Origin: Adineta vaga
Lineage: Eukaryota; Animalia; Rotifera
Length of the DNA stretch: 64,000 bases
Reading direction: 5' to 3'
Assembly (NCBI GenBank): GCA_021613535.1
Contig: CP075492.1
Coordinates: 1,240,001-1,304,000, forward strand
The notes under the pieces were generated by a model. The model searched no databases. It had not been told where the DNA came from and saw nothing but the letters and a program-made list of their open reading frames with translations. The position numbers were made by a program, and so were the translations under genes. Below are positions 285-60,124 of this stretch, in pieces. Each line of letters begins with the position of its first letter. The first letter of the stretch is position 1.

Positions 285-316
285 TTGAGGGTGTGGGTGA
301 GTGTGGATGAGGGGTG
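285..316. repeat. Telomere-repeat hairpin element, left arm only
   Basis: TTGAGGGTGTGGGTGAGTGTGGATGAGGGGTG. Confidence 0.7.
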
Positions 317-828
317 GCCCATAGGATATCAGAGTAGATTTCATCTAGATAAAGAAATCCAGATGAAAGATATCACAAGATATATTAGAACGAGGTGTCA
401 TACATCTAATATGACAAAGTATTCATCGAAATTAACAAAGAAACAATGAAAAAGAAATACATAACAACATAATACATGATATCCAACAGATTACTATTTC
501 AAACGAGGGTATATGTTGACGTCTTTCTAGACTACAAATACCGCGTGTATCTCAGCATAAAGTGTCGTTCAACACCAACTATATCTTCGATGAAGTCCTT
601 GAAATCGTCTACCTTACTAACATTATTCCCTGTAAAACCGTTTAAATCTCACATAACCATTTATGTAAGTTCTAAGTTTTTTTCTCTTTTTCCCCTTCTA
701 GATTCCGATGAAGTCAAGTTATAACTTGACAGAAACTAGTCAATAAAATACAAAAACAAATTATATTATTTTTTATTTATATATATTTCGAGAGAGTGTA
801 CGGGAGAAAAACAAGATTATATCTTTAA

Positions 829-858
829 AAACAAAGAGTAACCAATTACTCTTTGTTT
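829..858. repeat. Perfect 13-bp inverted repeat with 4-nt loop
   Basis: AAACAAAGAGTAA-ccaa-TTACTCTTTGTTT. Confidence 0.8.
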
Positions 859-1067
859 GATATTTCTGATGGATTTTGTTGAATCAAATTGCGCTAAACT
901 ACCATTGATAATTTCTTCTGTTAATTCACATAATGATATAAGAACTTGAAATCGAGCTCGTGCTGTTGCCTAAAACTCTCGGTTCCTTTCACTATAGTAA
1001 TTATATACATAATCAGTCCATTTTTGACCAATGAAATCTGATGAACAAATGCTTCATATGCAATGAT

Positions 1068-1115
1068 TAGCGTGCGGGTGTGGGTACAGAATGAATGTCA
1101 CACCCACACTCTCTA
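1068..1115. repeat. Telomere-repeat hairpin element (spacer family I, shortened)
   Basis: GCGTGCGGGTGTGGGT-acagaatgaatgtc-ACACCCACACTCTC. Confidence 0.8.
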
Positions 1116-1142
1116 TTTCAGTTTAACCTACATCACTGGGGC

Positions 1143-2170
1143 TTATTTCAGCAGTGCACTAGAAGCAAATAATTGTACGAAACATGTGGGGATTTCTAAA
1201 GCAGTATTATTGAGTGCATTGATCGCAATTGGTTCTCCGAGGCATAATTCTTCCCGTTGATATAAATCGGCGAAATGATTTGTGGTAAGATATCGGAACT
1301 TTGTGCGCATGTTCAGACTTTTCAGAGAACGCGACCACTCTTCGGGCTGGAACGAAGTCAATTGTTCCTCCATTTCGTACTGAAAGTGCTCGATATCCTT
1401 CCAATAGAGCAGTTTGAATAATACGTCTTCGCCAAAATCACTGGTAAAATGACTCGTGTCTCGTCATGTGATGATATGGACATTGAATTCTCAGAGAATG
1501 GAATATTCCGTTCTTGTGCGATGTAATTAGCTACCGCAGCCACATCATCTTTGTGTAAACCGAACGAACGTACAGCGATAGAATCAGTAAGTGTTGACCA
1601 GTTACGTGGTGGACATGGTTCTCGGGTATAAAACATCACTTGCAGTCCTGCATTTATTAGTGGTGCTATATATTGCTGTAAGAAAGCTTCTTCTGTGAAT
1701 GTTGACGAACGTGAGAGCAGTTCGTGCAGGACGGATTGACAACTGATAAGAACAGTCAATATTTCACCTTGTTCGTGCCAATTGAGCAGGTTGTAATACC
1801 ACTTTTGCTGCAGCATCCATGACATCATCTTCGACGACAACAGCAATACCTTGAGCACGAGCTTCAGCTGCTGCACATGGACTAATTTCCACAAGGATAC
1901 CATACTGAGAAACTAATGCGTCCATTAGTGCAAATAGATCTGAACCATCCGCTCCTCCTATCGACACCACTGCTGTAGAGCTGCGTATGTTTGTTAAATC
2001 GTTGCCGTTGTTAGCTTGAAAATTTGGATGTAAAAACCAACGCTGGTATTCTTCGTCAACGCATTGAAGAACTTCACTGGCTTTTCGAATACCCTTATTC
2101 TTGAATAAAGATTGATAATCTTCGTCGTGTAACAAATCAACATTGGTAATAGAAACAGCACTCGGTCCAT
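1143..2170 (-). pseudogene. Frameshifted, 5'-truncated fragment resembling a SAM-dependent methyltransferase
   Basis: Three overlapping ORFs (1764-2135, 1358-1903, 1143-1373) read as one protein across two frameshifts. Motif-like SIGGADGSD, VEIS, EDD, SVLHE. Frame stays open up to the hairpin at 2171. No introns; looks more GC-rich than flanks. Confidence 0.5.
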
Positions 2171-2233
2171 CTTGAGGGTGTGGGTGTGATTGAAGGTAAT
2201 AAGACGATATCTACAGTCTCACGTACAACATCA
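2171..2233. repeat. Telomere-repeat hairpin element (right arm decayed)
   Basis: (CAT)CTTGAGGGTGTGGGTGTGATTG...CTCACGTACAACATCA. Confidence 0.75.
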
Positions 2234-2494
2234 TGTAGGTTCGTTCTAGAGGAAATGAAAAGTCGATATTATATGGTATTTGCACAATGCCATAGTGCGA
2301 TGATTTCATTAGAATTTCAACTAAATTGAAGGTTGAACACTCAAGGGTGAGACAGAGAACTCAATTTTAAGTTAAATCAAAGCATCTAGCTTTATTACAA
2401 TCATTAGCAAACATTGACAATCAAAAATTCAACTTTGTCGCCGTTGCATTTTCCTATTTTTTCCGATTGTAAACTGAGTGATTATAACGGAAAC

Positions 2495-2542
2495 AGGTGG
2501 ATGTAGGTTGCAATGTTTTGATGATTGCCATCCACACCTCTC
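2495..2542. repeat. Degenerate telomere-repeat hairpin element
   Basis: AGGTGGATGTAGGTTGCAAT...ATTGCCATCCACACCTCTC. Confidence 0.5.
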
Positions 2543-2599
2543 GCAGTTAAATGATAGTTGTTGACAAGTGTTCGAATGAGAGCAAATCAAAGAATTTAT

Positions 2600-9431: not shown

Positions 9432-9484
9432 CTTAGGGATGAGAATGAAGGTGCCACTAATTGAACCCTTCGTCACATCCTCAA
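9432..9484. repeat. Degenerate telomere-repeat hairpin element
   Basis: CTTAGGGATGAGAATGAAGGT...ACCCTTCGTCACATCCTCAA. Confidence 0.6.
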
Positions 9485-10163
9485 CAAAATTTCTTCATTC
9501 AAATTATCTAATAGAGAAAATACATGTGGTCAAATAAAATTGTTTTTTTTCTCAATTTTCATTAAATGAATTTCCTAATTTACGACGATTATCAATAAAA
9601 AATTTAGATCAATGGTCATATTTTACTGAACAAATCTTAAATAAATAAACACATTTAACAACAAAATGATTTTCAGGATGAAGATTATTTTCCATTAATA
9701 GAAAATTTATAATCTTATTTTCATATCCACATTATTAGAAAGTAAATTAAAAACAACAATATATTTAATTTTAAATCCAAAATGTAAAATTTAATCAAAT
9801 AAAAATAAATTTTCCAAATATTCAATTATTATAACATTTGATGAACCATTATCATTTTCTTCTCAATTAGAAAATCATATTTCTGCAATGAATTATATAA
9901 AACAACTTAAAACAATTATTAAATAACGATGAATTATCTGATTATTTTAATGTCAAAATTAAAGAATTAATTATAAAAGGAAATGTATTTTCGGATTATT
10001 TATTAATGAACTTATCAAATTTATCTGTTCATTGTATAAATATTTTTAATCAAGATATTCAATTTTGGATTGAAGAAAATCTTCAAGAATTTAATGGAAC
10101 ATTTTTATTAAATAAATATGATAATACTTCACATTTTTGGATGGATAGATATATTAACAAGTA
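9485..10163 (+). pseudogene. Decayed fragment of a leucine-rich (F-box/LRR-like) protein
   Basis: Translates to FSLNEFPNLRRLSIKNLDQW... with multiple stops; begins right after the hairpin. Confidence 0.4.
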
Positions 10164-10351: not shown

Positions 10352-10397
10352 CATCCAACACCCAACTCTATACCCCCGCACCCACAATTTCACTCAA
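10352..10397. repeat. Right arm of a degenerate telomere-repeat element
   Basis: CATCCAACACCC...ATACCCCCGCACCCAC...CACTCAA. Confidence 0.45.
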
Positions 10398-13058: not shown

Positions 13059-13100
13059 TTGATAGGTGTGAGTCTCTTGTATTCACACCCACACCCTCAC
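13059..13100. repeat. Telomere-repeat hairpin element
   Basis: TTGATAGGTGTGAGT-ctcttgt-ATTCACACCCACACCCTCAC. Confidence 0.75.
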
Positions 13101-13575
13101 GGATTTATCAGTAATCTCAGTGGTTCAACAATTCTTGGTAATGATTACGTATTTAAAAGTTTCTTAAATTATAAATTTTTTTAATCGTTTTATTCTCTAA
13201 CAAAAAAGGAAATTTTCTTTTCCATATTTTTGTGTCATGATATTTTTATTATTTTAAAAGTTTTTCGGCGATAACTCTAATCTATGTGCATAGACAACAA
13301 TCATATCAATTTACTATTTAATTCACATGTTTATTGACAAAAACAGAAAAGATGTCGTTGAAGAAATATAAATACATTATGCAAAAATAGAAGTTTTTCA
13401 ATATTTAGACATTCGAATCTAGTCATATAATAAACGAGAATATTGAGTTTCTATTAATTAATAAATATTTAGAAAATTTTTACGATTCATTACAGAAATC
13501 AGATATAATTGTACATGAGATATAAAAGTACGAGACATTATTCAAATTTCATTTTTGTTTTTCAAAAACAAAGTC

Positions 13576-16084: not shown

Positions 16085-16117
16085 TTGAGGGTGAAGTTTA
16101 AATCTTAATCATTCCAG
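16085..16117. repeat. Degenerate telomere-repeat element
   Basis: TTGAGGGTGAAG... just 3' of the gene. Confidence 0.35.
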
Positions 16118-16790
16118 AAATAAAAATAGAAAGCACCTGTTCAACCATAATTGATACTGATCCAACATCGTGTTGATAAATTCGTTCGTACCTTTTCTCT
16201 ATAGAGTGCGCAGTCCCCTTCTACGATCTTCGTATTTATGTTTTAATTGCGATGAATCGTGATCACTAACAAAGAGTGTCGGTGCTCGACGATTTGATAT
16301 TTGTGTGAGATTTTATGCGAATGTTTAGAACTTCATATTGACGAGCAAGAGAAATTTGACGTTTTCGTTCACCAACGGACCACACTGTACTTTAAAAAGA
16401 AACTGTATACGAAGACACTTTCTTTTGCTTTTTTTCTTCACCGAAACGTCAAATATATGGTCTTTCATCTGTATTATCTTCGATATTCGTTAAATCTCTT
16501 ATTGTATACCGTAAATATATAGAGGCAAGAACAAGAAAGAAGAAACTGGAAATTTTGTTCTGTTTCCTTATATGTACTCTCAAGTTGGATAATAGGAAGG
16601 ATCGATAAATCCTTATCTAGTTATATATACTTGAGAAATACTTATTTTCTTTAAACTATAATCTCTTGTAGTCAATTGGTCTTAGTAATACTCTATTGTG
16701 TATATAACTACAAAAGTGATCTGAAGCAGAAAACACATGCATAAGAAAAACTGCATAGAACAAAAATGAATCACAATTGATTGGTATCCA

Positions 16791-19109: not shown

Positions 19110-19169
19110 TTGATGGTGGATGAACGTGAGGATGCTTTTCTATCGATTGCCCTCACCCACACCCTCAAG
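19110..19169. repeat. Telomere-repeat hairpin element
   Basis: TTGATGGTGGATGAACGTGAGG...GCCCTCACCCACACCCTCAAG(AT). Confidence 0.75.
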
Positions 19170-20090
19170 ATGGGATTAGAACAGTTATCTGGGTGGGGGC
19201 GGGGGCGTTGATGTCTGGATCCAAGATGCACAATTGCAATGCCTAGGTTGGGTTCTCAAAAAAACTGAATCTGATATGTAAAAAGCGTCAGAAAATAGTG
19301 CTACCCGATTTTTATGATATATTTATCATTGATTTACCTGATGAGGAAAAAGAATGAGAATATTTTTGAAAAACAAATTTGCATTCATTACTCATCAGAT
19401 CATTGCATTGATGCTTTTTTTCCTTTCTGTCATCGAGCAACATGACTCGCACTTACTCAAAACAAGTTATACAAGTATATAAATATCAATGAAACGAAAA
19501 CATCTCATAAGTATACTTCTTTCATCTAAACTTAATTCAATGACGATAAAATCATATCTGGTAGTTTATAATGCAAGGAAATAAAATGTCGATTCAACTG
19601 AAAGAAATGAGTCTCTTGTGGAGTCAATGGTCTACTCCATTTTACAATGGAAGCTCACGATGGTCAACAAATATAAAAACGTCAGCATGCTGATAGTTTA
19701 CATTTCTATGCTGGAACACATCGTAATCTGAACGAAACTGAAAAATAGTTGCGATTTATGGATGAGAACAAACTCAGTTGGTGTAATTAGGCATTAAATG
19801 ATAAACCAGAAAGTACTTTTGTACTGACGATTTTGGTAAATGTTGCTATGTATCGCTTCTTGCTCTTGGAGCTTTATTATAACCTGTAACTTAAAAATGA
19901 ATTCTTGATAGACGTCGAAGTATAGAGTCGTTTTTCATTTCTTCCAACAAACAACCATGTAATTAATGATGAAGAGCAAACCGAATCAAACTTGATTATC
20001 ATCATCTGAAGCTGAAAATCTGCTCCCTTCGCCATTTACTAGTGATCAAACTATATGGGATCTTGTTTCTAACACATCGTCATCTTATCT

Positions 20091-20136
20091 CTAGGGTATG
20101 AGACTGAGAATGACCATGGTCTACACTCACCTTCAG
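20091..20136. repeat. Degenerate telomere-repeat hairpin element
   Basis: CTAGGGTATGAG...ACACTCACCTTCAG. Confidence 0.5.
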
Positions 20137-20443
20137 TTAATATAATATCGTCTATTTACCAAGAAACAATTATTCATATGTACACAATTTGATATTAATG
20201 GAATTTCTTCTCAAATTAAAAGTTTATCGACATTCTTAGAATCGAAAAATAATCTTGAAATCGTAAATTTAAAGAAAAAATTGTATGTTTGTATGACCTT
20301 CAAAGCATCATTCTAACTTAAAGATTATCAAAATTGAGTAATTTGTCACCTATAACTTGTGAACTATTTCTATTCACAATTGTGACTGAACAAAATTAGC
20401 TGTTCAACAGCTGAAGCAACTCGTTTTAAATCGATTCGAACAC

Positions 20444-20478
20444 GGATGTGGATGAGAAAATAACTCTCATTCTCAAGA
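20444..20478. repeat. Degenerate telomere-repeat hairpin element
   Basis: GGATGTGGATGAGA...TCTCATTCTCAAGA. Confidence 0.45.
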
Positions 20479-20589
20479 TCACCAACTGCTTTGAACAATT
20501 CTTTTTTTTTTCTTTCTTTTTCTGTAATATATCTATTATATCTGTTGAGTTTATTAAGCTTTGCTATCTGTCATTCAAATACATAAAAA

Positions 20590-21107: not shown

Positions 21108-21170
21108 TTGAAGGATGTGTGTGAGTATGATTTTAGAATGAATATTATACACAACCACTCACACCCACAT
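21108..21170. repeat. Telomere-repeat hairpin element (spacer family I, diverged)
   Basis: TTGAAGGATGTGTGTGAGT...agaatgaa...CAACCACTCACACCCACA. Confidence 0.7.
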
Positions 21171-24131: not shown

Positions 24132-24276
24132 CTTGAAGGTTAAGGAATCTACCGTGATCATGATCTCATTCTTAATAAGGACTTTTCAGACGGCATCGAT
24201 AGAGTACTTATTCGAAGTGAATCGAATATGTTGAGGAAAAAAAGAATCATGGACGAAGTCCATGAGACACCTTCAA
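24132..24276. repeat. Diverged hairpin element (spacer family III)
   Basis: CTTGAAGGT...AATCATGGACGAAGTCCATGAGACACCTTCAA; inner segment matches 30709-30735. Confidence 0.6.
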
Positions 24277-25645: not shown

Positions 25646-25693
25646 TTGAGGGTCGGTGAGGGTATGGGTATATTTTCTTCACTCACACTTTCA
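25646..25693. repeat. Telomere-repeat hairpin element
   Basis: TTGAGGGTCGGTGAGGGTATGGGT...CACTCACACTTTCA. Confidence 0.7.
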
Positions 25694-25755
25694 TCGAATT
25701 TTTCTTTGTTTATCTCAGCAAAGACGGTTGACAGCGCAGTAACAGATATTAAACG

Positions 25756-27460: not shown

Positions 27461-27544
27461 TTAAGAGTATCTTGAGGGTATGGGTGTGGGTAACGATACA
27501 GAATGAATAAACTACAACCACATCACACTCACCTTCACTCTTAA
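27461..27544. repeat. Telomere-repeat hairpin element (spacer family I)
   Basis: TTAAGAGTATCTTGAGGGTATGGGTGTGGGT-aacgatacagaatgaataaactacaacc-ACATCACACTCACCTTCACTCTTAA. Confidence 0.85.
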
Positions 27545-30614: not shown

Positions 30615-30749
30615 CTTGCGTGTGGATGTGGGTGGATAGAGACACTGACTTGCACCCATACATACTGATGACTTTTTTGTTATATCAATCAGAATGCGAA
30701 GAAGACACAATCATGGATGAAGTCCATGACACACCCACACCCACCCTTG
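30615..30749. repeat. Telomere-repeat hairpin element (spacer family III, long)
   Basis: CTTGCGTGTGGATGTGGGTGGATAGAGACACTGAC...CATGACACACCCACACCCACCCTTG; spacer near-identical to 35026-35126. Confidence 0.85.
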
Positions 30750-31705: not shown

Positions 31706-31772
31706 TTGAGGGTGGGTGTGGGTGTGGGTGTTAGATAGATGTACTATACACACCCACACCCACACGCTCAAG
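31706..31772. repeat. Telomere-repeat hairpin element (spacer family II), best-preserved copy
   Basis: TTGAGGGTGGGTGTGGGTGTGGGTGT-tagatagatgtactat-ACACACCCACACCCACACGCTCAAG. Confidence 0.9.
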
Positions 31773-32398
31773 AACCGCGTATAACCACCAGTATGTATAA
31801 AAAAGTGACGACATGGGTTTTTACATAAAATTAATTGTATTATTTCTGAGAAATTAGACCAGTAATTATAATTAGGTTAAACGAATTAGCTATCGGATTA
31901 AAGCCGCGAGATAATCTCCTCCAGGTAATATCAATTCACTCTTGAATAAAAATTAGACATCTTCAATTAATGTGCTCAACTTTCATTGTGCTCATCGTTC
32001 CGGTTCGCGTTATGATCACACAAATACAACATATCATTTGAATAGTTATATATTAGATTTTTATAAACATGATTCTGAAGCATTATTAATCACAGAAAAT
32101 GGTTTAAGTTCTGGTGATACATATATATATGCTTTTATTAGATTTTCATTTGATACTTTCATCAATGAAAACATCATTATATCGAATAATAGAAGTTTTA
32201 CATACAAACTTTTCAATAAAGTGCAGATAAAACGATTATTTGCACAGCGAATCACGTCCATGTGCTCGTTTTCTTTTCTTAGGCTGAATCGTCGACTATC
32301 ATACATTTCTATCGAGATAAATTACAAAAGAGAAAAGATAATAACATATAGAAAACAGGTATAAACGGTTACAAGTCAATAATATTATTTAGTGTAAA

Positions 32399-34480: not shown

Positions 34481-35025
34481 AGGTCGATTACGTTATTTTT
34501 AATAGTTTTTCATAGTCTCCCCTAGCTATACGAAACTTCAATTTATTTTTATTTCAACATGGTTAGATAGAGTGTCGTTTACTCTTTCTATTTATACTAT
34601 TTTGGTTTTTCTTGCAATATCTTCTCGATAAAATAATGCTAGATTAAAAACAGGTACTTTAAAAATTTTTTGAAGGTGTATAACATATTTGATATTTCTT
34701 GCTTTACCCGTCAGATAATTCATAACAGGCAAACAAACATAACTGCTGTTCGTTACAAAACATATCAACAATCCATAGAAAAATAATTAATCATTTTCAT
34801 CGTGTAACGCACATATTTTTCATTTTCTTTCACTGAAAAAATATCGTGTTTTCAAGCCAAAAATGAGATCTTTTGTTGAAATTTAATGTTTTTATCACCC
34901 GCAAACGTTATTCAGAGTTAAAGTGAGATGTATCAGAGAGAAATAAAAATAAAGCTTTCGATATTGCTGAAAAATACATATTATCATTCGTTTCAAACAA
35001 GTTTAATAAATAATGTGAGATCAAA

Positions 35026-35400
35026 TGGGTGGGTGTGGGTGTGGGTGGATAGAGACACTGACTGGCACCCATCCACACTGATGATTTTTTTGTTATATCA
35101 ACCAGAACGCGAAGAAGACATAATCACAACAGAACATATACCAAGGCTACCAAATTAAAATTCATGAAACCAGGATTTGACCAGGAGACCTTAATTAGAA
35201 TTGGGAAACATTTGTTTTGCCTTTTTTTTTGACAAAATTGAAATATTTTTCACATGAGATTAAAATCTTCTACTATGGTAGTATAGTTCTAGCTCATTTT
35301 TCTGAATATAACAATATATGATATAAAAATACGAACAATTATATGTCGTTTTTCATTATCTATTTCGAAATCAATCACATGACACACCCACACCCTCGAG
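35026..35400. repeat. Telomere-repeat hairpin element (family III) with about 245-bp insertion in the spacer
   Basis: TGGGTGGGTGTGGGTGTGGGTGGATAGAGACACTGAC... and CATGACACACCCACACCCTCGAG. Confidence 0.8.
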
Positions 35401-35436
35401 TTAAGTAGTAACTGAATAGAAAGACGGTCTTATTCA

Positions 35437-38820: not shown

Positions 38821-38929
38821 CGAGGGTGTCGATGCCACTGCTCTCGCGATAGACAACACACCAGCAGATGTGGGTGTTGTGGGTAAAGATGCAGAATGAA
38901 CTAACTACAACCACACACATACACCCCAG
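38821..38929. repeat. Telomere-repeat hairpin element (family I, composite)
   Basis: CGAGGGTGT...GTGGGTGTTGTGGGT-aaagatgcagaatgaactaactacaacc-ACACACATACACCCC. Confidence 0.8.
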
Positions 38930-41239
38930 AAATATATTTCAAATATTGGAACTATTTTTATTAGTAGATCAAGTATTTTATTAAAGCAATTTCAAATTTT
39001 AGAAAAATACATGAAATTTGCCTTTTTATGTGGTAAATTTAAATAAATTTCATCTACATTCAGTTATTCCATAAAAAATTTTTGATTAGTAGAATACATG
39101 ACAAATCTCGATCGAAATATTCACTGCCCACTAGTCACCGATGATATAAGGATTAAAACCTTTCTGCCGGATAATACTGACCTCTTCTCGATATATTTTC
39201 CAGTAAAGTATATAATTCTAAGTATTTAAAGAAATATTTATTTTTGAGGGCATGGCGGTCGCCGGTTCGCCGAATAGCTAGATCCGCAGCTGACTAGAAA
39301 CTATTTCTAACGAGTCAAAGTGTATGAACTATGACTGGAATTTTTTCGGCTTTCAGAATATGAGTTTATAATGTTTCTCGCAGATTTTAATTTGAAGTAC
39401 CAAAATCATCTTTGATGAGCCCGAAAAACGTGGTTTGAAAAAATTGCGCGTCACAATTTACAGTAAACATATTTGTGCATTTTATTCTCATGTAAAGAAG
39501 TTCAGCTGGCTCATAGTTAGTGATTATAATGAGTATTTTGCGCTCATTTTAAACATAAACTTAGAAAGGACGAATCTATCTCTATTTAAAATACTGAAGG
39601 AGTTCCTGACATGCCCCAAAAATTATTTTGAATCGTGAATCGACAGAGCTTGGTTCACCCTATAAGTTTTTCTTCGATCGTCCTAAATGTTGCAGTGTCT
39701 TGTTCACAGAAATCAATATCAAAAGTATCTGAGCTTCTACCTGAGTTTACCTATAACCATTTTATCAAGAGTGTTTTCAATGTAAGATTGTTTTCATCAA
39801 AATTTGACTTTTTCTCAAAAACTAGTAAGTTATATCATTCGATAATAGCATATATTCTTGAAATTTCTTTTTACGCATGTGCTTATAAGACTTTTTTGTC
39901 AATATCCGTCGAAAAAGTAATCGATGTGTAAAACAAAATAGATCAGAGTAGCTTTGGGAAAAATCTAGAAATTTTTTTCTGACGGTACGGTACGTTGTTA
40001 ATGAAGGCGGTATACGGTACGAGACGGTATCAATTTTTTTGCAATACCGCCGGTCATTGGTTCCGACTATAGTATTTTCCACGTTCACGTATGTAGAAGC
40101 AGAATTGTTCGCGATCATAACATATACGATTCTCTTTGCGTCGTTCATATATGAGAGGATATTATTTGTAATGATAGTCTTTCTTTCTGTTCTTTTTCCT
40201 TTTTGAATATGAGGCCATGTGTTCACCTTTTTCTAACTCAATTATATGTCATTTTTGATTGTAGAGTCGCTCATATTTATGATTTTGAAAAATTTTGCTT
40301 CATAATTAAAAGCTATTAGATACTTCAAGAATCTTATTTCTACTTCAAATTCATTCGGAATATTTAAAAAAAGTCGGTTTTACAATAACAAGTTGAAATG
40401 ACCAAAATACAAAGTTATGATTAAAGTAACTATCCATCCGAAGATGAAAGGAGAAAGATATTTGACTTAGTGTTTGAATACTCTATTTTTAAAGAAATAT
40501 TCATTACTTTTGAACGTACTAAGTTGTTAATTAATAATGTACAATCTTACGTGACGAAGTAAAAGGAAAGTCACGTCATTTTTATGCTGTATTCTTTCGT
40601 ATACCGCCTGGCAATAAAAAATATTAAGAAAGTTGATAAATAAAAGCAATTATTTCTTTTCTTATCAAGCCGAAGTTCTAATTTGGAATATTCAATGATA
40701 TTTGAGTTTCTTTTTCTTCTATTTCAACGTGAACATCACATGTAAAATCCATGACAAGAAATATTATGTACACATTTTATATTGTCCTATGGATTGATTG
40801 AATATGATTAGAAGATAAATAGCGACATTTATAATCTCAAGACAGAAATGCATGATTAGAAAAAAGCAAAGCCAAAGAACAAATAGTGTAATTACTATTA
40901 TCGTTTTCCTACATCCTCTGTGATAACATCAATCCATCCTTTTTTTCTCAAACCACTATCAAATTAAATTACTATCAATATTGTAATAGACTGTATTTCA
41001 ACAACTTATTCGTATCGATGAACAAAAAAAGTGGTGGGTGAGCGTTTTTTTCTAAAATCAAGAATCTCGAAAGAATATAACAAAATCGTCGATAAATGTG
41101 ATTAATATTCCTTTCATTTTAGGACAATTTTTATTATACTTCGTTTTGAAGAAATTTTCTATTGAAGGCGCAAAATCATTGTACATGTTGATCGAAGTAT
41201 TGACAAACAACTATAGATAATTTCAATACTCTGATTTGA

Positions 41240-43081: not shown

Positions 43082-43244
43082 AACCTATATGAAAATTAGT
43101 TAAATCTTTTATTTTTGTTATAGATCAGTTTTAAATAAAAATAGGCCAAATACAGTTGACATATCTCAATATGACCCTCATCATCAAGATGATTCTGCAG
43201 AGATAAATATGAATTTAGTTATCTTTTCTTTGAGAGTGTGCGCA

Positions 43245-48953: not shown

Positions 48954-49562
48954 ATCGATAACAACTCTTTTATGTGTTTTAGAAAGTAAAAGTAGAAATA
49001 AAAATACAAAAAAACTTATTTCTTTTCAGAATTAAATCGGTGTTTCATTTCGTGAAATCCCTATTAAAAACTGCGGTCTGCATATTATAACGAAAAATAT
49101 CACTATATATGAATCAATTTATTTTTAACAGATGCATTGATTAAAACTAAATTTTCCATCATCATACAACATGAAAATAGAAAAAAAAATACGTTGTAAA
49201 AAATACGAATCTATCCATTTGCAACGTAGAATAAATCCTCTTTTCTGTTTTTTGAAGTGTTTCATAAATCAGAAAATGGTTTATTCTTTTCTCAAGTATG
49301 GCAAAAAAGGAGTTTTTTTTATACGTTACAAATTCATAAACCTTTTCTATGTTTATGAGACCATCATAAACGATTTTACCGTTGGTTATTCTCTACTTCT
49401 TTTACAATATAGCAACATGTGATTTCTAAATTAAAATAGAATATTTTTATTAAATACCAACAAACGATAATGTTCAAATTAAATTTTTCAATTTTTATGA
49501 TAATATAGTGTGATTTAAATTAGAAAAAATATAGTTTGGAAAGTTGAAACTACAAAGGACAT

Positions 49563-49618
49563 CTTGAGGATGTGGGTGTTTATGAGGGTCTTTGCCTTCA
49601 ACCATACACCCACACCCT
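49563..49618. repeat. Telomere-repeat hairpin element
   Basis: CTTGAGGATGTGGGTGTTTATGAGGG-tctttg-CCTTCAACCATACACCCACACCCT. Confidence 0.85.
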
Positions 49619-52238: not shown

Positions 52239-52287
52239 TTGAGGGGTGAGGGTGATAAACAGAAGAACAGCCCACACTCTCACCCTA
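52239..52287. repeat. Telomere-repeat hairpin element
   Basis: TTGAGGGGTGAGGGTG...CCCACACTCTCACCCTA. Confidence 0.7.
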
Positions 52288-52478
52288 CCAAACCAAACAC
52301 AATCGAACAAAACAAATATTTATTTCAAAAGAAAATCGATGTACTTGTACATCAGCATGGCGCATACATAAAATATGTCGTAGACTTCAAAACATAGTGC
52401 ACTCACGCGAAATCTAGAAATCTAATGTGATCATTGAGATACCACCTAAACAAGATATTATGATCATATCGCAATAAT

Positions 52479-52538
52479 AGGTGTGGGTAAAGATACAAAA
52501 TGAACCAACTACAATCACACCACACCCACACCCTCAAG
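52479..52538. repeat. Telomere-repeat hairpin element (family I)
   Basis: GGTGTGGGT-aaagatacaaaatgaaccaactacaatc-ACACCACACCCACACCCTCAAG. Confidence 0.85.
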
Positions 52539-52644
52539 ATGAAAAAAAAAGTACGACATATGAGTAATGATAATCTATCCATCATTCTTTATCTTTTATT
52601 TGTTTGTGTATACCAAAACAGTTGATTATACAGAATTTTGTTTG

Positions 52645-55600
52645 TCAAAACTCTTTTGAATATGTTGTTGAAGGTAAAACAAAGAGTACAAAACCAAGTA
52701 ATTGTGGTGTATAGGAGAATAGATAAGCAGCGTATAATAAACGTCTTTGCCAGAAGAACATTTCTGTACATGAAAAAGTTAATGAAATAATAATTTGTGG
52801 TAAAGAACTAAAAATAATGATCAACGGAGTAATATATAATTCTTTTTGACTATTGAATTGTTGTTTAAGATGAATAAAGAATTTATCGTAATTATGTTTC
52901 GAACGTACACGACTTCGAGTAGAGAGAAAAACAAGAAATGTAATTGAAATAATTTGAATAAAGAATGGAATCAAATGATGAAAAAGTACATTACCAAAAT
53001 TATATGATAAAAATATTGAAGAAAAATTTCCCACACACATTACATATCCACTAGGATCTTGTATGATCGTATAAAAGATCAATTCATGACAATGCATTAT
53101 AGATACAATAATTAGAGTAATTAAACTTATTCCTAAAGCTAATTTAGGTATTTTTAATCGTTTACTAAAAGGAAAAAGAACTAAACATAATCGATCGAGA
53201 GCAATCCAACTCGTTAACCAATAAGTATAACGAATCGATATTGATAAGATAAAAGAAATTGCTTTACAAGAAATAATACGTAATATTGAATTGAAATAAA
53301 TATCAATCACTTTACATAGTAATGATAAAAGAGAAAATTGATTGAAAATCGATACAATAAGAAGATAATAACCAACATTAAATTTACGTGGAGTCGGCCG
53401 TTTAAATGTAATAAAACTTCCATAATTAGTCCATCCACCTACAAGAAACAATAATAGACTAATAATCAAATAAATCATATGAACATTTCGATTCTCTTGA
53501 ACAATCAATGAATCTATTGTAAAACTCATTTGTCGATTATCAAATTGACAAAATTGTCCTTGATAACATGATGGACAAATACATAGGAATTTATTATTTA
53601 TATCATTTAAACATCGACCATTGGCTAAACATTGAGAACATTTATCATAATAATGATTATAAATAAAACATTCAACTCTTGTGTGTTTATTATTACATAT
53701 ACAAAAATAATTTTCATCATAAAAACATAATAAATGTAAATTCTTTTGACAACGAGAATGATATTTCGATAGATAATAATCTATAGAAGAGAAATATCGT
53801 ATATATCATCTTTTATTGTTCTCAATTAATAATTCAAAGAAAAATATTTCACTTACTTTCATTATTTGAAAATAAAGAATGAACATGTTTACATTGATTA
53901 TATTCTTCAAAAGATATATTTGTTCGAATAAATGTTTGATTTATTTGAATTGTTAATAGATAAATTTGAAAATGATTAAGAAAATAAATTTTTAATAAAA
54001 TTAATTCTGGAATTATTCCATTTTTATGAATATAATGAAAATAAGAAGGTAAAATAGAATAAATATTTTGATTAATAAGTATTAAATCTAAATCAATAAA
54101 ATCTATTTGAAAATATTGAATAACAAGAGCTTGATAAGTAATATTTGTATTCTTTTTAACATTTAAATAAATTGATTGTTCAGAATCTTGACAATTTTTT
54201 CCGTAAAATCCTTCGATACATTGACAATTATATTCATTTGGTTTGGATTGTGAATAACATGTTCCATTATGATGACATGGATTAGTTGAACAAACATCTA
54301 AAATTAAATGACATCGTTGACCAAAATAATTCAATGGACAAATACAATAAGGCCATGAATATCCCGAAATCAAACTTTGTGAATCCGGTTGACATAATGC
54401 AGTTGATGAACAATAATTTTGATGGCAAAGTTGATTAATATTTGTACAATTCAATCCCGAATAGTTACTTTTACAAAGACAAATATATTCTGATGGATTA
54501 TTTTCAATTTGATAACATTCTTGATTTGAATTACATGGTTGATTGATTAAACATGGATTTGATATATTTTCATTTCGATTAAGAAATCGAATAACTTTAG
54601 CTAAACGATAAACAGAAAGATAATCAAAATAAATGAAATATTTCCACACAGCATAACGTCGTGCTTTTTCATTGTTTAATAATTCATAAGCTTCAATACG
54701 AATTGTATAAGGATGTTCAGTAATAATATTTAATCGATTGAAATATCGATTTTGTTTTTTAAGAATAAATTCTTTTGATCGAGAATAATCAAAATAAATC
54801 ATTTTCTTTGTAATTTTATTGATTTCATCGATTGGTCGAAGATGAAATTCTTTTATATCAATAACAAGATGATAATATAGAAGAAGAATCAGATATTTAT
54901 TAGTAATATTCTTTGTAGAATTTGAATAAGTAAAATTAATATGAATATTCAATGTGAGACGATCTGTATGATATTGACATTGATCACCATGATATTGTGG
55001 AGGACAAAAACAAATAAAAGAATTATTAAATAATTTTATAGGAATACCACGATTACATTGATTTAATATTGTATTCAATGGAATTTCTTCAGAATCATTT
55101 GTTTGATTTTTTGTAAGATTTTCTAATCGAACCGATACGAATGGATATTGAAGTAATTCAATTGTTTTTCTTCTCATTTGTATTTCAACTTTTTTCTCTT
55201 CACGATAAGGTCTTTTGAATTGTGATACGACTCGAAATGTACACATATATTCATCTTCACCATAGAGACAATTCAATATACCATCACATCGTCCTTCTGT
55301 ACATGTACCATTCCAACATTGAAAATTCGGTGGATGGATATGAGAACATTGATTAGTTGCATAACATAGTTTACAGAAAGATTCAGTATAGGGACTAATT
55401 GTCAAAGTAGATATATATCCGCGTGAAATAGTTAAACAACTTTTCATAGATAAACATGGAGAATAATATTCAAGTTTAGTTAATAATTGATAACAATGAT
55501 CAAGAATATTCTTTTCATCACATCTATTGAAACAATTCATTTGAATAATTTTTTCCGATGGTAAATTAATGCAATGTTCATTCAGATGAGAAGAAAGAGA

Positions 55601-57733
55601 AATATCATTTGGTAAACATTGAAATTGATCGGTTGAATTGCAAATATTCCAAAGAGAATTTTTTGGATAATTTTTATAGAAATTCTCTTTTAAATTAGAA
55701 ATGTTCTTAAACAATCGAGAATTATGATTAGATAAAGAAATATTCCAAGCAAAAAAATTTTCTTCATCCGAACCATCAGGACAATCCCATTCACCATCGA
55801 ATATCCAATTCAAATCGATACAATGTCCACTATGACATTGAACTTGTTCTTCTGAACATATCCATAATTGACAAAAAATTCGATTTTCATCCGATATTCT
55901 TGAATTATCTTCAAATGTATCACACCAAGAACGAAAGGGAAGAGTTTTATTCGAGAAATCTTTCGTCTGAGTATTATTGTGGATCGTTAAATTCCATGAA
56001 GTTTCAATATATTGACGAATAAATTGACAATCAACTTTGGATTGACTATTACAAATCATTCTTGACAGTGCCATTTGAGTTCCCATAAAAAATTCATCAT
56101 AATTATTTTTACATGAAGTAATTGAATTTCCCAATTCATTCGCATAGAAACAAGTGACTTGTTCGGAAGAACATCGGAAACGATGACGTTGAACATTGGA
56201 ACACGATTGAGTAATTAATTCATTTGATTGTTCTTCATCTCTCTTGAAAAAACAGTTGCTAATACCATCGTGAATTCGATAAGTTGAAAGACATCTTTTT
56301 GAATAAACACAAACATCAATAAAATTATAAGAACGATTATTAAATGTTCGAGAATCGTTATGACAAAATGGATCGTAACCCTTATTTGATAAATTTCTAA
56401 GCGGTATACCAGCTGAACATACGAATCCTTCCGCTAGTTGAAGGCCATGAGAAAAGTCAAACGACCATGGTAATTTATCGAAATGCTTTAAATCTCCACG
56501 ACATTTTATAGTTCCATTTATCCTCCATGATTGTGCTGTATGCGTCAAACCAAATGGCATAACATAATACCCGAAAATATATGGAGCAATAAGACCTCGC
56601 TTAGGATAATAACTGACATTCCATGCCGAGCAAATACTAACGAATAATTCGATACATTGACTTTTGTTTCTTTGACAAGAACAATCTTGTTTCAAACCAA
56701 ACGATATTTGACATATTTTAAGATAATGACAATAATCATCGATGTTTTGTTCGTCAAAAGTTTTATTTTTCGAACATCTTCCATTCTGTAAAGTCCATAA
56801 ATCTTCTTCGTACGCAGTTTCACACCAAAAAAACTGATCGCGTCGATTCATACAATCTGGCAAACCACGAGTACTACTATGAAAAGGCATGCGATCTAAA
56901 ATACATTGTCCATCACCACAAGACCATTGATTTGGATGACATATTCGATCATCACATAGATAATTAGCCGATTGAAAAGCACAATTTGTCTCATTAAATA
57001 AATCTTTTTCATCAGACATATCCATACAATCAAAATCACCATCAAGAAAAAATTCATCTGGAATACACATTCCATTCATACATCGATATTCATCTGATTC
57101 ACATTCATTAAATTCTAATAAATCACAATTTTCTTCATCATATCCATACATACATTGTTGATTACCATCACAAATATCTCTCCAATCAAGACATAACATA
57201 CCAAAATCACATATTAATGTCTTATAACAAACAATATCACCAATATACATAAGTTTTTCAGAGTTTTTATTAAATTTTGCAGATACTACTGTTTCAAATA
57301 CATTACCCAATGGTAATAAATATTCACAATACTTGCCAAAAGATTGTTTATTTGTGCATTCACAAAGATATTCTTCTGTTTCGTTTGATTTATCTTTATA
57401 TTTCAAATAATAGATATATTCTTCGACTTGATCAAGTGAAGATTTCCAATTATGTAAAATTTCATGTACACTGATATTTTCCTTCCATAAAGAGAAAAAT
57501 GAATGACGTTTACCTTCATAACAATGCCATGGTTTATAATCACGTTCTAATTTTATTGGATATAATGGCCGTAGACAATAGAATAGCGTTTCATAATAAA
57601 GACAATCATACGTTTGAATAGATAAACTATCTTTTGTATTATAAAGATAAATGGAATCTTTAATTGAAGAAGCAAATTGTACGAAGAGAATTACCGATGG
57701 TATAGAAAACATAATGGATGATTCTGTCAACAT
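52645..57733 (-). CDS. Large receptor: LDLa repeats + EGF repeats + class A-like 7TM
   Basis: 1294-aa exon with CDG..DC.D.SDE LDLa and EGF motifs, one intron at about 53783-53853, then EGF and 7TM (WIALDR). Confidence 0.85.
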
Positions 57734-57923
57734 TTTTTCTAGAAATGTGAAAATTTTTCTCTTATTCTTTGTGTTAATAGAACATGAGATATTTAATTAA
57801 AAGTTAGGAACAAATACATTATTGATGCCATGCTCTTCTCAATTTCTTTGGAACGTGATTTATGATTTTTTTTTCTCATTGCTATCGGATGACATTAATG
57901 AATTCATCTATTCTCAGTTAAAT

Positions 57924-57992
57924 AAGAGGGTGGGTGTGGGTAAAGATACAGAATGAACCAACTACAATCACACCATATCCACATCCACTCTT
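57924..57992. repeat. Telomere-repeat hairpin element (family I)
   Basis: AAGAGGGTGGGTGTGGGT-aaagatacagaatgaaccaactacaatc-ACACCATATCCACATCCACTCTT. Confidence 0.85.
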
Positions 57993-58790
57993 CTCTGCTA
58001 TCTGCTCGACACTCAATACTCTACTACGAGATATTGTAGTTATTATCAATTGACGATTCCCTAAGCCTGTTTCTGATTTATATATGCACCTGTAACTGAC
58101 GAAGATAATTCTGAATTATGTGAACAAACATAATACGATAATATTCGTACTGAAGCCTTTTGAAATGGATCTTTTGATTTAAAAATAAAGTGTAAAGGAG
58201 ATGTTTCATACTCATCCAATGTTTCACAACTTTACAATATCGATCTATTGATCAAGATAGTGTTATTTCATTCATGAAAAATATCCATGTTTTAATATAA
58301 TTCTATAAGAAAATGATCTATTTTTGTCGAGAAAAATCTTGTTGAGATATTCATAATTTATCATTATTATAATTTGAAAGAAAAGTTTTTTTTTAACTTC
58401 ATGTTTTCCTAAACAATATATTTATCAGCTATATGTTCATTCATTTCCAACTGAGAAAATGAGTTTTATTTTCATAATAACTTCATTAACTTATTTTCTA
58501 AAAAAAGAACTATAATTAAAATGATATAATATATTGAATTTCAATGAGAATCTTCTATTGTGTAGAAGTCTTTCATATACATGTTGACAAGTTTAATTCA
58601 CGAATATATAATTCATCATATTGATAATGACAAGATGTGACGTCAATATTCTATCTAGTTTTTTTTTCTAATCTTAAAAGTCAAAAGGCAATAATTATCT
58701 TTTCATAATAAAAGTAGATAAATTTTAATATCATTTGGAAAAAGAATTTTTCTTAACGTCATACATATCGTCACATTGATTAATATTACA

Positions 58791-59699
58791 ATGTCAACAT
58801 CAATTTTACCTTATATTCAACTTCAAATAATTCGTTATGGAACACCAACACTTCTTATTTTAGGTAATTTTGGTAATATTTGTATTATAATTATATTTCT
58901 TAAACGTCGTCAAAGTTCTTGTGCAATGTATTTATTATTTAATGCAATATTTAATAGTATTTATTTAACATTTAATGTTATTTTATCTTTCTATGGTCTT
59001 TATTATGGAAATCCAACAAGTTCAAATCTTATTCTTTGTAAATTACGTTATTATTTATCACAAACATGGAATCAAACAGCTGTTTGTTTTGCAATATTTT
59101 CATGTATTGATCGTTTTTCTTTAGTTACACGTTATAAATATCTTCAATCAATGAATAAATTATTTATAATTCGATTAATTATTGGAATAACTTGTATTTC
59201 TTGGTATATTATATATATTCCAACATTATTCTTTGTAACAATTGAAAATCGATCATGTATATTAATTGGTACATATAATATTATTTATTTTGTTTATATT
59301 GCAATTTTTCATTCATTAATTCCACCAATGTTAATGATTATATTTGGATTTTTATCTTATCGAAAAATGATTCAATTACATTTACGTGTTCAACCTATGA
59401 TGAATAATAATAATAATACTATTACAATTCAAGATCGAGATCGAGAATTATTTCGTATTGTACTTGCTCAAGCATTTACTTATGTCTTAACAATTTTACC
59501 TTATCCATTTATTATTTTAGTAGTTGCTGTTAGTAATTATATTGGTATAGAGAAAAGTGTACAACGTATACAAATTGAAAACTTTTTGTCGGTTATTGGA
59601 GTAATACTTCTTTATTTAAATTGTTCTACGCCTTTTTATACATATTTTGTAGTTTCAAAAGCATTTCGTAAAGATTTTATCAAGATTTTTATTCGATGA
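58791..59699 (+). CDS. Intronless class A GPCR
   Basis: GNFGN, CKLRYY, SCIDRF, PPMLM, FYTY..VSKAFR. Confidence 0.88.
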   Translation: MSTSILPYIQLQIIRYGTPTLLILGNFGNICIIIIFLKRRQSSCAMYLLFNAIFNSIYLTFNVILSFYGLYYGNPTSSNLILCKLRYYLSQTWNQTAVCFAIFSCIDRFSLVTRYKYLQSMNKLFIIRLIIGITCISWYIIYIPTLFFVTIENRSCILIGTYNIIYFVYIAIFHSLIPPMLMIIFGFLSYRKMIQLHLRVQPMMNNNNNTITIQDRDRELFRIVLAQAFTYVLTILPYPFIILVVAVSNYIGIEKSVQRIQIENFLSVIGVILLYLNCSTPFYTYFVVSKAFRKDFIKIFIR

Positions 59700-60047
59700 A
59701 ACCATCCAAGTTCATAATGTTACATTTTGCTAATGAATAAAATAAGACATGAGATTAAATTATTCTTTAAGAGGATTTTATTTTACGCAGTATAATTTGA
59801 TTCATTATGAAAGTGAAAAATTCTCTCATCTTCAGGATAAATATCATTCGAGGACGTCACATTCAGATTTAAAGTTCAGAAGACATTTGTGTATTAAAAC
59901 AACTTCTTTCTTATTTTGTAAAAGGAAAAAAGTTCAATCTTATACATATATTCTTTGCCTTCACTGTTATTTTCACTCATATTTACATTCTATGAAATAT
60001 ATACATTATATGTGTAGAATTAGGTAAAAACTTATCTTTTGAGACTT

Positions 60048-60124
60048 TTGAGCTAGGGTGTAGGGTGTGGGTGTGGGTGTGTTAGTATTACATCTATCGA
60101 ACACCCACACTCACACCTTCTAAG
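60048..60124. repeat. Telomere-repeat hairpin element (family II, inverted relative to 31706)
   Basis: AGGGTGTAGGGTGTGGGTGTGGGTGTGT-tagtattacatctatcga-ACACCCACACTCACACCTTCTAAG. Confidence 0.9.

Follow-up and report, generated by a model that had tools for sequence, protein, structure and literature searches.

Telomere-repeat hairpins of the bdelloid rotifer Adineta vaga share the 3′ tail of Athena/Terminon-type retroelements and may be scars of healed DNA breaks

Bdelloid rotifers survive massive DNA breakage, and to our knowledge their share of foreign genes is the largest among animals. Retroelements of the Athena/Terminon type carry a hammerhead and reverse-complement telomeric repeats at their ends and attach to exposed DNA ends (PMC6431247, PMC8557442, PMC3846280). 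At new deletion breakpoints in A. vaga lines, telomeric repeats and Athena fragments have been observed, and breakpoints of this species reportedly bear signatures of neotelomeres (PMC13564844). Earlier work already covers telomeric repeats at interstitial sites, Athena tails, and neotelomeres at breakpoints. We describe here an inverted, leader-bearing, spacer-sharing unit of which we found no description in the accessible literature, a scope that leaves key Athena/Terminon papers outside, so that an earlier description may exist.

We analyzed a window of 64,000 nt on chromosome 3 (1.24–1.30 Mb) and searched the whole genome (100.8 Mb, 6 contigs). The window holds about 20 clear inverted repeats with terminal arms of the form ATCTTGAGGG(TGTGGG)n, where zero are expected by chance (Table 1). 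The 16-mer GGGTGTGGGTGTGGGT, allowing up to 2 mismatches, has 16 matches in the window and 0 across 100 shuffles, and the 23-mer consensus, allowing up to 6 mismatches, finds 17 arms compared to 0.1 expected. An earlier, sequence-only reading had listed 24 positions. About 20 of these are recognizable as a G-arm, a spacer and a C-arm; the copies at 9432, 16085 and 24132 are very degenerate, the C-rich stretch at 10352 is doubtful, and those at 285 and 2171 are lone arms.

Table 1. Hairpins, single arms and relics in the window (window positions; a dot marks features given without a strand).
Feature	Position	Strand	Adjacent sequence
Single G-arm, partial leader (TTGAGGG...), without C-arm after	282..318	+	
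Short hairpin, spacer family A (ACAGAATGAA-type spacer)	1063..1112	.	
Single arm, full leader (CC, then ATCTTGAGGG)	2169..2260	-	
Degenerate hairpin	2495..2545	.	
Very degenerate, weak hairpin (ATCTTAGGG...CCTCAACAAAAT)	9432..9492	.	
C-rich stretch, doubtful copy	10352..10383	-	Within segment 74% conserved in two paralogs
Hairpin, G-arm short, C-arm good (…CACACCCACACCCTCACGGAT)	13059..13103	.	
Weak relic (ATTGAGGGTGAAG...)	16085..16130	.	
Hairpin, G-arm decayed, C-arm ending CCCTCAAGAT, then GG	19110..19171	.	
Decayed hairpin	20091..20137	.	287-bp gene fragment homologous to L031 starts ~20 bp rightward
Decayed hairpin ending CTCAAGAT	20444..20481	.	L031 homology of 20155-20441 fragment stops at left edge
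Decayed hairpin	21108..21170	.	
Weak relic (ATCTTGAAGG...)	24132..24185	.	
Hairpin, C-arm decayed	25646..25700	.	
Family-A hairpin, full leader	27469..27540	.	Right edge is start of PARG-type gene 3′ fragment (27541-27771)
Family-B relative, 125 bp	30615..30742	.	GPCR-paralog homology begins 5-9 bp beyond
Well-preserved hairpin, fold z -7.3	31706..31774	.	L044 homology (80%) ends exactly at left edge
Family-B hairpin, split by nested ~270-bp dispersed repeat (X module)	35024..35402	.	
Family-A hairpin (earlier listed as 38821)	38866..38930	.	
Hairpin, full leader	49561..49617	.	420-bp dispersed repeat ends 3 bp before
Hairpin, purine-rich spacer (GATAAACAGAAGAAC)	52239..52295	.	
Family-A hairpin, C-arm end CCCTCAAGAT	52479..52540	.	
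Family-A hairpin, 93% identity to 52479 over 54 bp	57924..57995	.	LDLa/EGF gene ~130-190 bp downstream
Well-preserved hairpin, fold z -4.6; spacer similar to the one at 31706	60048..60125	.	

The hairpins are non-coding and 45–130 bp in total length. Their arms range from 12 to >120 bp and are built from hexamer units, with just 2–4 repeats in most. TGAGGG is the outermost unit in nearly all arms, and a conserved leader, ATCTTGA, lies outside this first unit. Copies with unrelated flanks share the termini (C)ATCTTGAGGG...CCCTCAAGAT(G), and a C occupies position −1 at 25/52 arm ends compared to a background of 15%. Across the window and the fetched loci, 41/47 adjacent arm pairs run from G-arm to C-arm, and only 4/47 are in direct orientation. 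Two contigs from RNA runs carry arm sequence, in both cases from other loci. Contigs assembled from sequencing runs break at hairpin arms, and they showed neither a hairpin arising de novo nor an empty allele.

The loops had been described as variable, which is only partly right because they form multicopy families (A, B and C) and share a purine-rich motif. A AAAGAGAAGA-like motif is present in 36/60 spacers compared to 12.7 in shuffles; identical spacers occur at unrelated loci. Family C comprises five near-identical copies (93–98% identity) in which both arm–spacer junctions lie at fixed positions (5/5), a regularity more in keeping with the copying of a finished unit than with separate healing events at two ends. 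Environmental bdelloid-like DNA contains this leader and spacer motif too.

The arm with its outer end, ACCCACACCCACACCCTCAAGAT, is identical to the 3′ terminus that follows hammerhead ribozymes in this genome's Athena/Terminon-type retroelements. In 4/5 genome matches to Hammerhead_1, a C-rich tail follows within ~15–60 nt, closes with a TCAAGAT-like end and gives way to unique DNA. The tail after the L063 hammerhead reads exactly ACCCACACCCACACCCTCAAGAT and is identical to the hairpin C-arm over 23/23 nt; those of L062, L064, L065 and L083 are similar, and L083, an environmental contig, has the same hammerhead-then-tail arrangement. A pattern of hammerhead, spacer and ACACCC yields 61 matches compared to 2 in the control, and an RT-like ORF lies ~3 kb upstream of one hammerhead-bearing 3′ end (L068). 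This match to the tail after Athena/Terminon-like hammerheads suggests that the hairpins arose when broken ends were healed in the manner of retroelements or telomerase, and not as the programmed break/repair sites proposed earlier.

No hammerhead was detected in the window with Rfam, either at the gathering threshold or at E≤10, neither RT nor hammerhead sequence was found inside the hairpins, and the L063 hammerhead region has no match adjoining hairpin arms. Hairpin spacers gave no significant alignment to four Athena-like spacer segments (best score 20, null mean 20), and a CTTTAC-type short resemblance is all that remains between them. Read on the minus strand, the single arm at 2169..2260 is a C-rich tail with the end CCCTCAAGATGG; before this tail come a decayed stretch resembling a hammerhead and a 14-nt spacer. 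The arm is possibly a 5′-truncated Athena-like 3′ end.

Comparison with paralogs gave a clear empty-site test at nine edges belonging to seven hairpins. At all nine, paralog homology ends at or within ~20 bp of the edge without resuming beyond, and at none (0/9) are the flanks contiguous in the paralog. Target-site duplications are likewise lacking in all 13 young copies (8 perfect copies and 5 family-C copies). The segment 27541–27771 matches L043 at 79% from the first base after the hairpin at 27469–27540, with the gene's upstream portion absent at this site. Similarly, 31214–31707 is homologous to L044 (80%) as far as the edge of the next hairpin, whose right-hand flank is unrelated to L044 and matches a different locus, L042. 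The fragment 20155–20441 is boxed by two hairpins, and L031 is uninterrupted on both sides. Beyond these, the AKR paralog L046 breaks off in the middle of the gene, 19 bp away from a hairpin, a hairpin in L041 truncates a 420-bp repeat, and L004 and L052 have 679 bp in common (92%), each hairpin-capped at a different end; here the CC is present in the uninterrupted paralog.

In the window, 5/44 homology end-points fall within 6 bp of a hairpin edge compared to 0.46 expected (P ~1e-4), with two of the five, at 30747 and 49558, ambiguous. The GPCR edge of 30615..30742 is ambiguous because homology may begin there at a natural start of the coding sequence. The hairpins lie at joins between DNA segments of different history, often beside truncated genes. 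Their position, where breakage and rejoining took place, makes them look like scars of repair and not like gene boundaries by design. The paralog comparison is compatible with a hairpin formed at the break or already present before it and cannot date the two events. We note that truncated genes, pseudogene fragments and repeats abut many hairpins.

The distribution of the copies bears on the idea that they partition the chromosome into gene-sized cassettes at regular spacing. Gaps between copies have a CV of 0.94, as for random points (P=0.49), and the genes between hairpins lie on both strands, several of them being fragments, so neither part of this idea is supported. Non-coding gaps are filled only slightly more evenly than at random: on a crude gene map, 18 are occupied compared to 13.5–14.4 (P 0.007–0.03). 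Coding sequence is avoided, with 2–3 copies within our rough coding mask compared to ~11 expected (P ~2e-4); the only intron seen in the window is 56 nt. Hairpin copies number in the thousands genome-wide. The 662 near-perfect arms are concentrated toward chromosome ends, and 77/96 perfect arms lie within 3 Mb of one, a subtelomeric enrichment. Fold z ranges from −7 to −11 for perfect palindromes to about −1.6 for decayed relics, and old copies decay freely, as if neutral, down to half-sites. So wide a range is hard to reconcile with selection on the hairpins as boundaries or insulators.

We hold with moderate confidence that the hairpins are patches at breaks, in which ends capped by an RNA-templated telomere-like tail were joined head to head, recopied as small Athena-dependent elements, or both. 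In this model, in which template RNA, enzyme and joining of the ends are inferred, each arm consists of ...(ACACCC)n-TCAAGAT or, on the opposite strand, ATCTTGAGGG(TGTGGG)n, a telomere-like tail with which the hammerhead-bearing, endonuclease-lacking Penelope-like retroelements of the Athena/Terminon type in this genome also end. A free DNA 3′ end would prime reverse transcription on an RNA carrying this tail, either an Athena-type transcript or possibly telomerase RNA, and one or two bases of microhomology may serve for pairing. Priming would yield the leader ATCTTGAGGG together with a small number of TGTGGG repeats and, in some cases, a short spacer. Head-to-head joining of two such capped ends would then place a G-arm, a spacer and a C-arm between previously non-neighboring DNA. 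Complete hairpins would also be recopied, since families with identical spacers sit at unrelated loci, probably because transcripts of either strand end in the same tail, a SINE-like use of a partner's 3′ tail. The model predicts ...ACCCUCAAGAU in Athena/Terminon transcripts or in telomerase RNA. The leader could also belong to an earlier cap, e.g., one added by telomerase, with Athena attaching later; in that case, tail identity would be no proof that Athena RNA was the template. Only tentatively do we extend the model to a dedicated RT-based pathway in which every free end would receive a tail of leader plus telomere repeats and the capped pieces, gene fragments and incoming foreign DNA among them, would be stitched together.

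Non-autonomous foldback or MITE-like DNA elements, with terminal inverted repeats that are telomere-like by chance or evolved from telomere-like repeats and with duplication-free insertion at the DNA level, offer a possible but rather unlikely alternative. Because they are palindromic and numerous, such elements would break and recombine after insertion, leaving truncated genes and shuffled flanks alongside. Defined termini on copies with unrelated flanks, the fixed arm–spacer junctions exemplified by family C, and arms made of tandem short units of varying length, as in Drosophila foldback elements, all fit this explanation, and the literature mentions DNA elements of foldback-like type in bdelloids (PMC2861651). 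At L002, the genes flanking the hairpin are also neighbors in the paralogous C5 array, and this copy may be a simple insertion. Against it, target-site duplications and clean empty sites were not seen, and a non-exhaustive search found no transposase-bearing relative among the relatives of a 395-bp query around 35024–35402 or of the family-A copy 52474–52542; the longest relative, 35024–35402, contains only the nested unrelated repeat. These same findings agree with the sequence-only reading in setting the hairpins apart from a randomly inserted, ordinary MITE. Gene fragments boxed by hairpins would moreover call for two prior insertions in one gene followed by rearrangements, and the 23-nt identity with the Athena hammerhead tail would go unexplained unless Athena prefers attaching to broken hairpins.

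Less probable still are plain head-to-head fusions of telomerase-healed ends, i.e., interstitial telomeric sequences made with no retroelement, in which the leader would come from telomerase RNA beside the template and the template flank would read ...CCCUCAAGAU. The prevailing arm polarity is as expected for such fusions, as is the nearly constant outermost TGAGGG if copied once from a fixed RNA position; the neotelomere signatures cited above are also in line with them. In environmental contigs, unique DNA passes into the leader and then into long (TGTGGG)n tracts that reach the contig end; hairpins with 40–120 bp arms occur there as well. However, random fusions should leave unique spacers, not a shared motif, multicopy families and fixed junctions, most arms have few repeats, and no telomerase RNA gene was identified, which makes telomerase RNA a putative source of the leader. 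We consider it very improbable that the hairpins are selected functional sites, either boundaries or insulators to which a telomere-binding protein binds, or telomere seeds installed in advance, which on breakage within the spacer would give two fragments that each end in a correctly oriented G-rich strand. G-arm to C-arm would be the only orientation giving both fragments telomerase-ready ends, gap occupancy is somewhat more even than random, and the leader and spacer motif recur in environmental bdelloid-like DNA. Statistically random spacing, decay to barely foldable relics, concentration of arms in subtelomeres rather than genome-wide and the pseudogene fragments abutting many copies all argue against function, as does the lack of positional conservation of hairpins among LDLa/EGF family paralogs.

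If the repair-patch model is correct and the hairpins are healed-end junctions, they would offer an inexpensive record, readable from sequence, of breaking and joining in thousands of past events, by which the hairpin bounding of foreign genes or gene fragments could be compared with that of native genes. From ATCTTGA, the leader lying outside the first TGAGGG unit, part of the RNA template for new chromosome ends can be predicted. Should a dedicated capping pathway exist, the hairpins would be the joins that assembled bdelloid subtelomeres and horizontally acquired genes, and the leader would reveal which RNA template was used, the Athena tail or telomerase RNA.

Several known systems share individual features with these hairpins. 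Both attC and bacterial REP sites are short imperfect palindromes between genes, as the hairpins are. For the hairpins, however, we saw neither a partner integrase or HUH protein nor the structure of a core site, and no cassettes all pointing one way, and the attC-like recombination site proposed earlier finds no support in their architecture, in the genes on both strands between them or in a non-exhaustive Pfam scan of ORFs, which identified no recombinase. The ciliate elements TBE1 and Tel-1 carry inverted terminal telomere repeats flanking a transposase; the hairpins likewise hold telomere repeats in inverted terminal position, but the ciliate repeats are outermost and of opposite polarity. 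SINEs carry the 3′ tail of a partner LINE, and the hairpins resemble them as small non-coding units with a partner retroelement's 3′ tail, which would let the partner RT use the unit. In contrast to SINEs, they show no polymerase III promoter and no tRNA, 7SL or 5S head, are palindromic and apparently integrate at pre-existing DNA ends.

Like foldback elements and MITEs, the hairpins are short, non-coding, dispersed, numerous and gene-adjacent, with inverted arms of tandem short units and variable length; they differ in having arms identical to a retroelement tail, in that the non-exhaustive search found no transposase partner, and in lacking clean empty sites and target-site duplications, which in Drosophila FB are 9 bp. 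Head-to-head telomere fusions, such as human 2q13, place G-strand and then C-strand repeats at an internal join where two separate ends meet. The hairpins share this order and add a conserved non-telomeric leader, a shared spacer motif and multicopy spacer families. In endonuclease-independent insertion of LINE-1, cDNA patches breaks without target-site duplications and with deletions or rearrangements, and in twin priming both DNA ends prime, giving inverted structures. The hairpins resemble these as TSD-less, rearrangement-associated patches of retroelement cDNA, but their template would be a small RNA derived from a Penelope-like element, or just the final 25–60 nt of such an element, and the product is a near-perfect palindrome in thousands of copies.

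Closest are Athena/Terminon elements, which have a 3′-terminal tail of (ACACCC/TCACCC)n, reverse-complement telomeric and here ending TCAAGAT (PMC6431247, PMC8557442). They attach to free DNA ends without target duplication and concentrate in subtelomeres, and the hairpins appear to do the same. The hairpins differ in having neither an RT ORF nor a hammerhead and in being only 45–130 bp long. Whereas published Athena insertions are flanked by direct telomeric repeats, hairpin arm pairs are direct in only 4/47 cases, and the hairpins carry the tail twice, in inverted orientation.

The hairpin repeats described in the sequence-only reading are real. Allowing up to two mismatches, the 16-mer GGGTGTGGGTGTGGGT occurs 16 times in the window and never in shuffled sequence, and a 23-mer consensus with up to six mismatches recovers 17 arms where 0.1 are expected. 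When the listed sites were read, about 20 proved to be clear units of G-arm, spacer and C-arm, four were weak or doubtful, and two were single arms. Each arm consists of a conserved outer leader, ATCTTGAGGG, followed by (TGTGGG)n, and the C-arm, its reverse complement, ends in TCAAGAT. The G-arm precedes the C-arm in 41/47 adjoining arm pairs from the window and the fetched loci. On single-strand folding, young copies are very strong (z of -7 to -11) and old copies hardly fold (z of about -1.6).

The window (G000:C3:1240001-1304000) sits 1.2 Mb from a chromosome end in a genome of 100.8 Mb and six contigs (chromosome-level Adineta vaga assembly, PMC8494291); G+C is about 30% and TGTGGG repeats are present. 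Genome-wide, 662 arms lie within two mismatches of the 23-mer, compared to 2 for a reversed control, and five of these arms are in the window, about 12 times the genome average. The possible subtelomeric enrichment raised by the sequence-only reading was confirmed: 77 of the 96 perfect arms on contigs 1-5 fall within 3 Mb of a chromosome end, compared to 34% expected. As for natural telomere junctions, the first 10 kb of contigs C1, C3 and C5 contain no terminal repeats.

The window was cut into 20-kb pieces for a search of its own genome, and the informative paralogs were then read. A link to breaks in homology held up in these comparisons, which give no order of events in time. In the window, 5/44 homology end-points fall within 6 bp of a hairpin edge, compared to 0.46 expected (P ~1e-4), although two of the five are ambiguous (30747, a possible natural coding start, and 49558, the natural end of another repeat). 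The match between a PARG-type gene end and its paralog at locus L043 begins directly after a hairpin; the upstream coding sequence is present in L043, and the window has an opposite-strand methyltransferase gene there instead. L043 carries its own hairpin about 25 bp past the PARG-type stop codon. Similarity to locus L044 reaches the first base of hairpin 31706, past which the window loses its relation to L044 and is related to a different locus, L042. A longer sequence that continues in locus L031 is represented in the window by an internal piece, which starts about 20 bp past one hairpin and stops exactly at the next.

Other loci of the genome give the same picture. For the aldo/keto reductase paralog L046, the gene breaks off midway, and 19 bp separate the cut from a hairpin with a G-arm of about 125 bp. 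The copy of a 420-bp dispersed repeat in L041 stops short at a hairpin, and unrelated DNA follows. Loci L004 and L052 have 679 bp in common at 92%. In L004 a hairpin closes the shared part where L052 continues, and in L052 a hairpin opens it where L004 continues, matched there by a third locus. No clean insertion was seen among the paralogs read; the hairpin of L002 may be a simple insertion, because its two flanking genes are also neighbors in a paralogous array.

The hairpins are not an ordinary MITE, in agreement with the sequence-only reading. Target-site duplications (TSDs) are absent from 13 copies: eight perfect ones (L001-L008) and five near-identical members of one spacer family (L004, L053-L056), which are 93-98% identical with unrelated flanks. 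The sole flank signal is a C at position -1 in 25/52 arm ends, compared to a background of 15%. No transposase-bearing relative was found among those examined. The longest relative, a 375-bp copy, is long because of a nested, unrelated dispersed repeat of about 270 bp, its only content, and was rejected as an autonomous element. A piggyBac-type transposase ORF at locus L067 was also set aside as a partner, being unrelated to the hairpins. Sequencing runs were searched for empty alleles as Logan contigs, which are broken at the arms, and the apparent "joints" were actually cross-links between repeat copies.

The regular spacing proposed earlier was not recovered: the 23 gaps between window copies have a CV of 0.94, as for random points (P=0.49). 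On a crude coding map of codon-scored ORFs, copies do avoid coding sequence as claimed (2-3 inside, compared to ~11 expected), and 18 non-coding gaps are occupied, compared to 13.5-14.4 expected (P 0.007-0.03). The notion of about one copy per intergenic interval thus survives as a mild excess, but not as a regular array.

Bacterial- or fungal-looking single-exon genes in the window (aldo/keto reductase, methyltransferase, alcohol dehydrogenase, NAD-binding protein) share it with animal-type genes (NHL, SET, LDLa/EGF, rhodopsin-type receptors). Introns are tiny, 56 nt in the one seen, in an RNA contig. A homoeologous region for synteny, sought via the LDLa/EGF gene, yielded no close counterpart (best match 44% identical), and an exact-protein look-up of the aldo/keto reductase in other assemblies returned no record. 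A transcript of this reductase in a run labeled as a different organism differs from the window gene at 13/962 bases, which means that it is expressed in a close relative.

Features of the window and of two further loci (window positions unless a locus is named)
Feature	Coordinates	Observation
Family A hairpins	1063, 27469, 38866, 52479, 57924	at least five window copies sharing spacers
Interval searched against Pfam	1068-2233	no match
Piece continuing in L031	20155-20441	
Hairpin at PARG-type gene	27469-27540	
PARG-type gene end	27541-27771	last ~70 codons; 79% to L043
Similarity to L044	31214-31707	80%
Aldo/keto reductase RNA contig	32296-33434	spans the gene, without either adjoining hairpin
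Palindromic unit	34387-34482	unrelated to telomere-type hairpins; plant microRNA precursor models match both strands, below cut-offs; contig depth spikes; probably another MITE
Longest hairpin relative	35024-35402	375 bp
Dispersed A/T-rich module, ~270 bp	35140-35380	start CAGGGCTGCCAAAT, end AATCAATCACAT; also in L012, L014 and L017, the L017 copy holding a further nested inverted-repeat element
Dispersed repeat, ~2 kb	43242-45300	without hairpins or scored ORFs; 80-91% identical copies on contigs 1, 3, 4, 5, 6; probably a transposable element
Dispersed repeat, 420 bp	49135-49557	at least 7 copies, 78-81% identity; ends 3 bp before hairpin 49561
LDLa/EGF ORF	53849-57733, minus strand	single, 1294 aa, LDL-receptor class A + EGF domains; at least 30 paralogs, mostly subtelomeric, 30-46% identity, several with internal stops
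Five evenly spaced ORFs	60373-63998, minus strand	~117-165 aa, all one strand; exons or genes in tandem
Tandem hammerhead motifs	L063:1500-1760 (G000:C3:19516100-19516380)	two, ~180 bp apart; telomere-like tail after the second only; second core CTAATGA, not CTGATGA
piggyBac-type transposase ORF	L067:144-1529 (G000:C3:19506643-19508028)	intact-looking; DDE_Tnp_1_7, E 1.7e-75; ~8 kb from a hammerhead-bearing retroelement end

The arm resembles the tail of a known retroelement group. The 3′ end of Athena/Terminon elements is a hammerhead ribozyme and, after it, a short reverse-complement telomeric run, (ACACCC)n or (TCACCC)n, that base-pairs with the G-rich ends of chromosomes (PMC6431247, PMC8557442). 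A genome search with Rfam Hammerhead_1 gave five matches slightly below the cut-off, and five hammerhead-bearing ends were read. In 4/5 matches a C-rich tail lies about 15-60 nt downstream, with a TCAAGAT-like end and then unique DNA. The tail at L063, ACCCACACCCACACCCTCAAGAT, is identical to the hairpin C-arm and its outer end. A pattern of hammerhead core, spacer and ACACCC matches the genome 61 times, compared to 2 in the control. An ORF about 3 kb upstream of one hammerhead-bearing end has weak reverse-transcriptase matches, and the Atlas clusters closest to it consist of rotifer RT-domain proteins. Inside the hairpins we found the tail and no hammerhead; the CTGATGA in the 30615 copy was rejected as a ribozyme on its fold. 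Full-text literature searches for the arm sequence returned unrelated matches only.

The loops had been described as variable, and they are not unique. Besides family A, family B has two window copies and at least 12 dispersed loci, and families C and D have five to seven copies each. A purine-rich, AAAGAGAAGA-like motif stands beside the G-arm in 36/60 hairpins, compared to 12.7 +/- 3 in shuffled spacers, and 12/60 come within two mismatches of the 10-mer AAAGAGAAGA itself (2.5 in shuffled spacers). Derivation of the spacers from the Athena segment between cleavage site and tail was not supported by alignment with four Athena-like segments, which was not significant. A short resemblance, with YTTTA often preceding the hairpin C-arm and GCTTTAC directly abutting TCACCC in many Athena-type ends, leaves this origin as a possible lead only.

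One scan of metagenome contigs for leader plus repeats recovered 23 contigs from three related samples (Ga0116226, Ga0116228, Ga0116230), with a bdelloid-like G+C of 0.30-0.40. Several run from unique DNA through the leader into long (TGTGGG)n to the contig end, and several take the form of a hairpin, with the same spacer motif between arms of 40-120 bp. Another, L083, represents a hammerhead-bearing end; the tail of this end, ~75 nt long, terminates in CCCTCAAGAT and is followed by unique DNA. Hairpins and new chromosome ends could be sampled independently in these contigs.

Any explanation has to cover both the shared, defined parts of the hairpins and their position where sequence continuity is broken. 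As leader, repeats and related spacers are defined and shared, the units appear to be templated or copied. Plain telomere-telomere fusion fails on this point, since it is contradicted by the shared spacers. Selection for a function fails as well. The order of G-arm then C-arm would suit telomere seeding, but random spacing and free decay of copies contradict both this role and the boundary role proposed in the sequence-only reading. Chief among the competing readings is a foldback DNA element that lacks TSDs and undergoes breakage and recombination.

We rank end healing first. A free DNA 3′ end would prime on an RNA ending ...(ACACCC)n-UCAAGAU, whose 3′ end would read ...ACCCUCAAGAU, and the product would be leader, repeats and sometimes spacer. 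Two healed ends would then be joined head to head. Finished hairpins may be recopied, because transcripts of both strands would end in the same tail. The template could be either Athena RNA or telomerase RNA, and most copies could have arisen either de novo or by recopying, the latter being favored by the fixed junctions of family C. Athena/Terminon elements are able to use exposed ends or breaks as primers (PMC3846280), and the reported presence of telomeric repeats and Athena fragments where new deletions have arisen in lines of A. vaga (PMC13564844) fits end healing.
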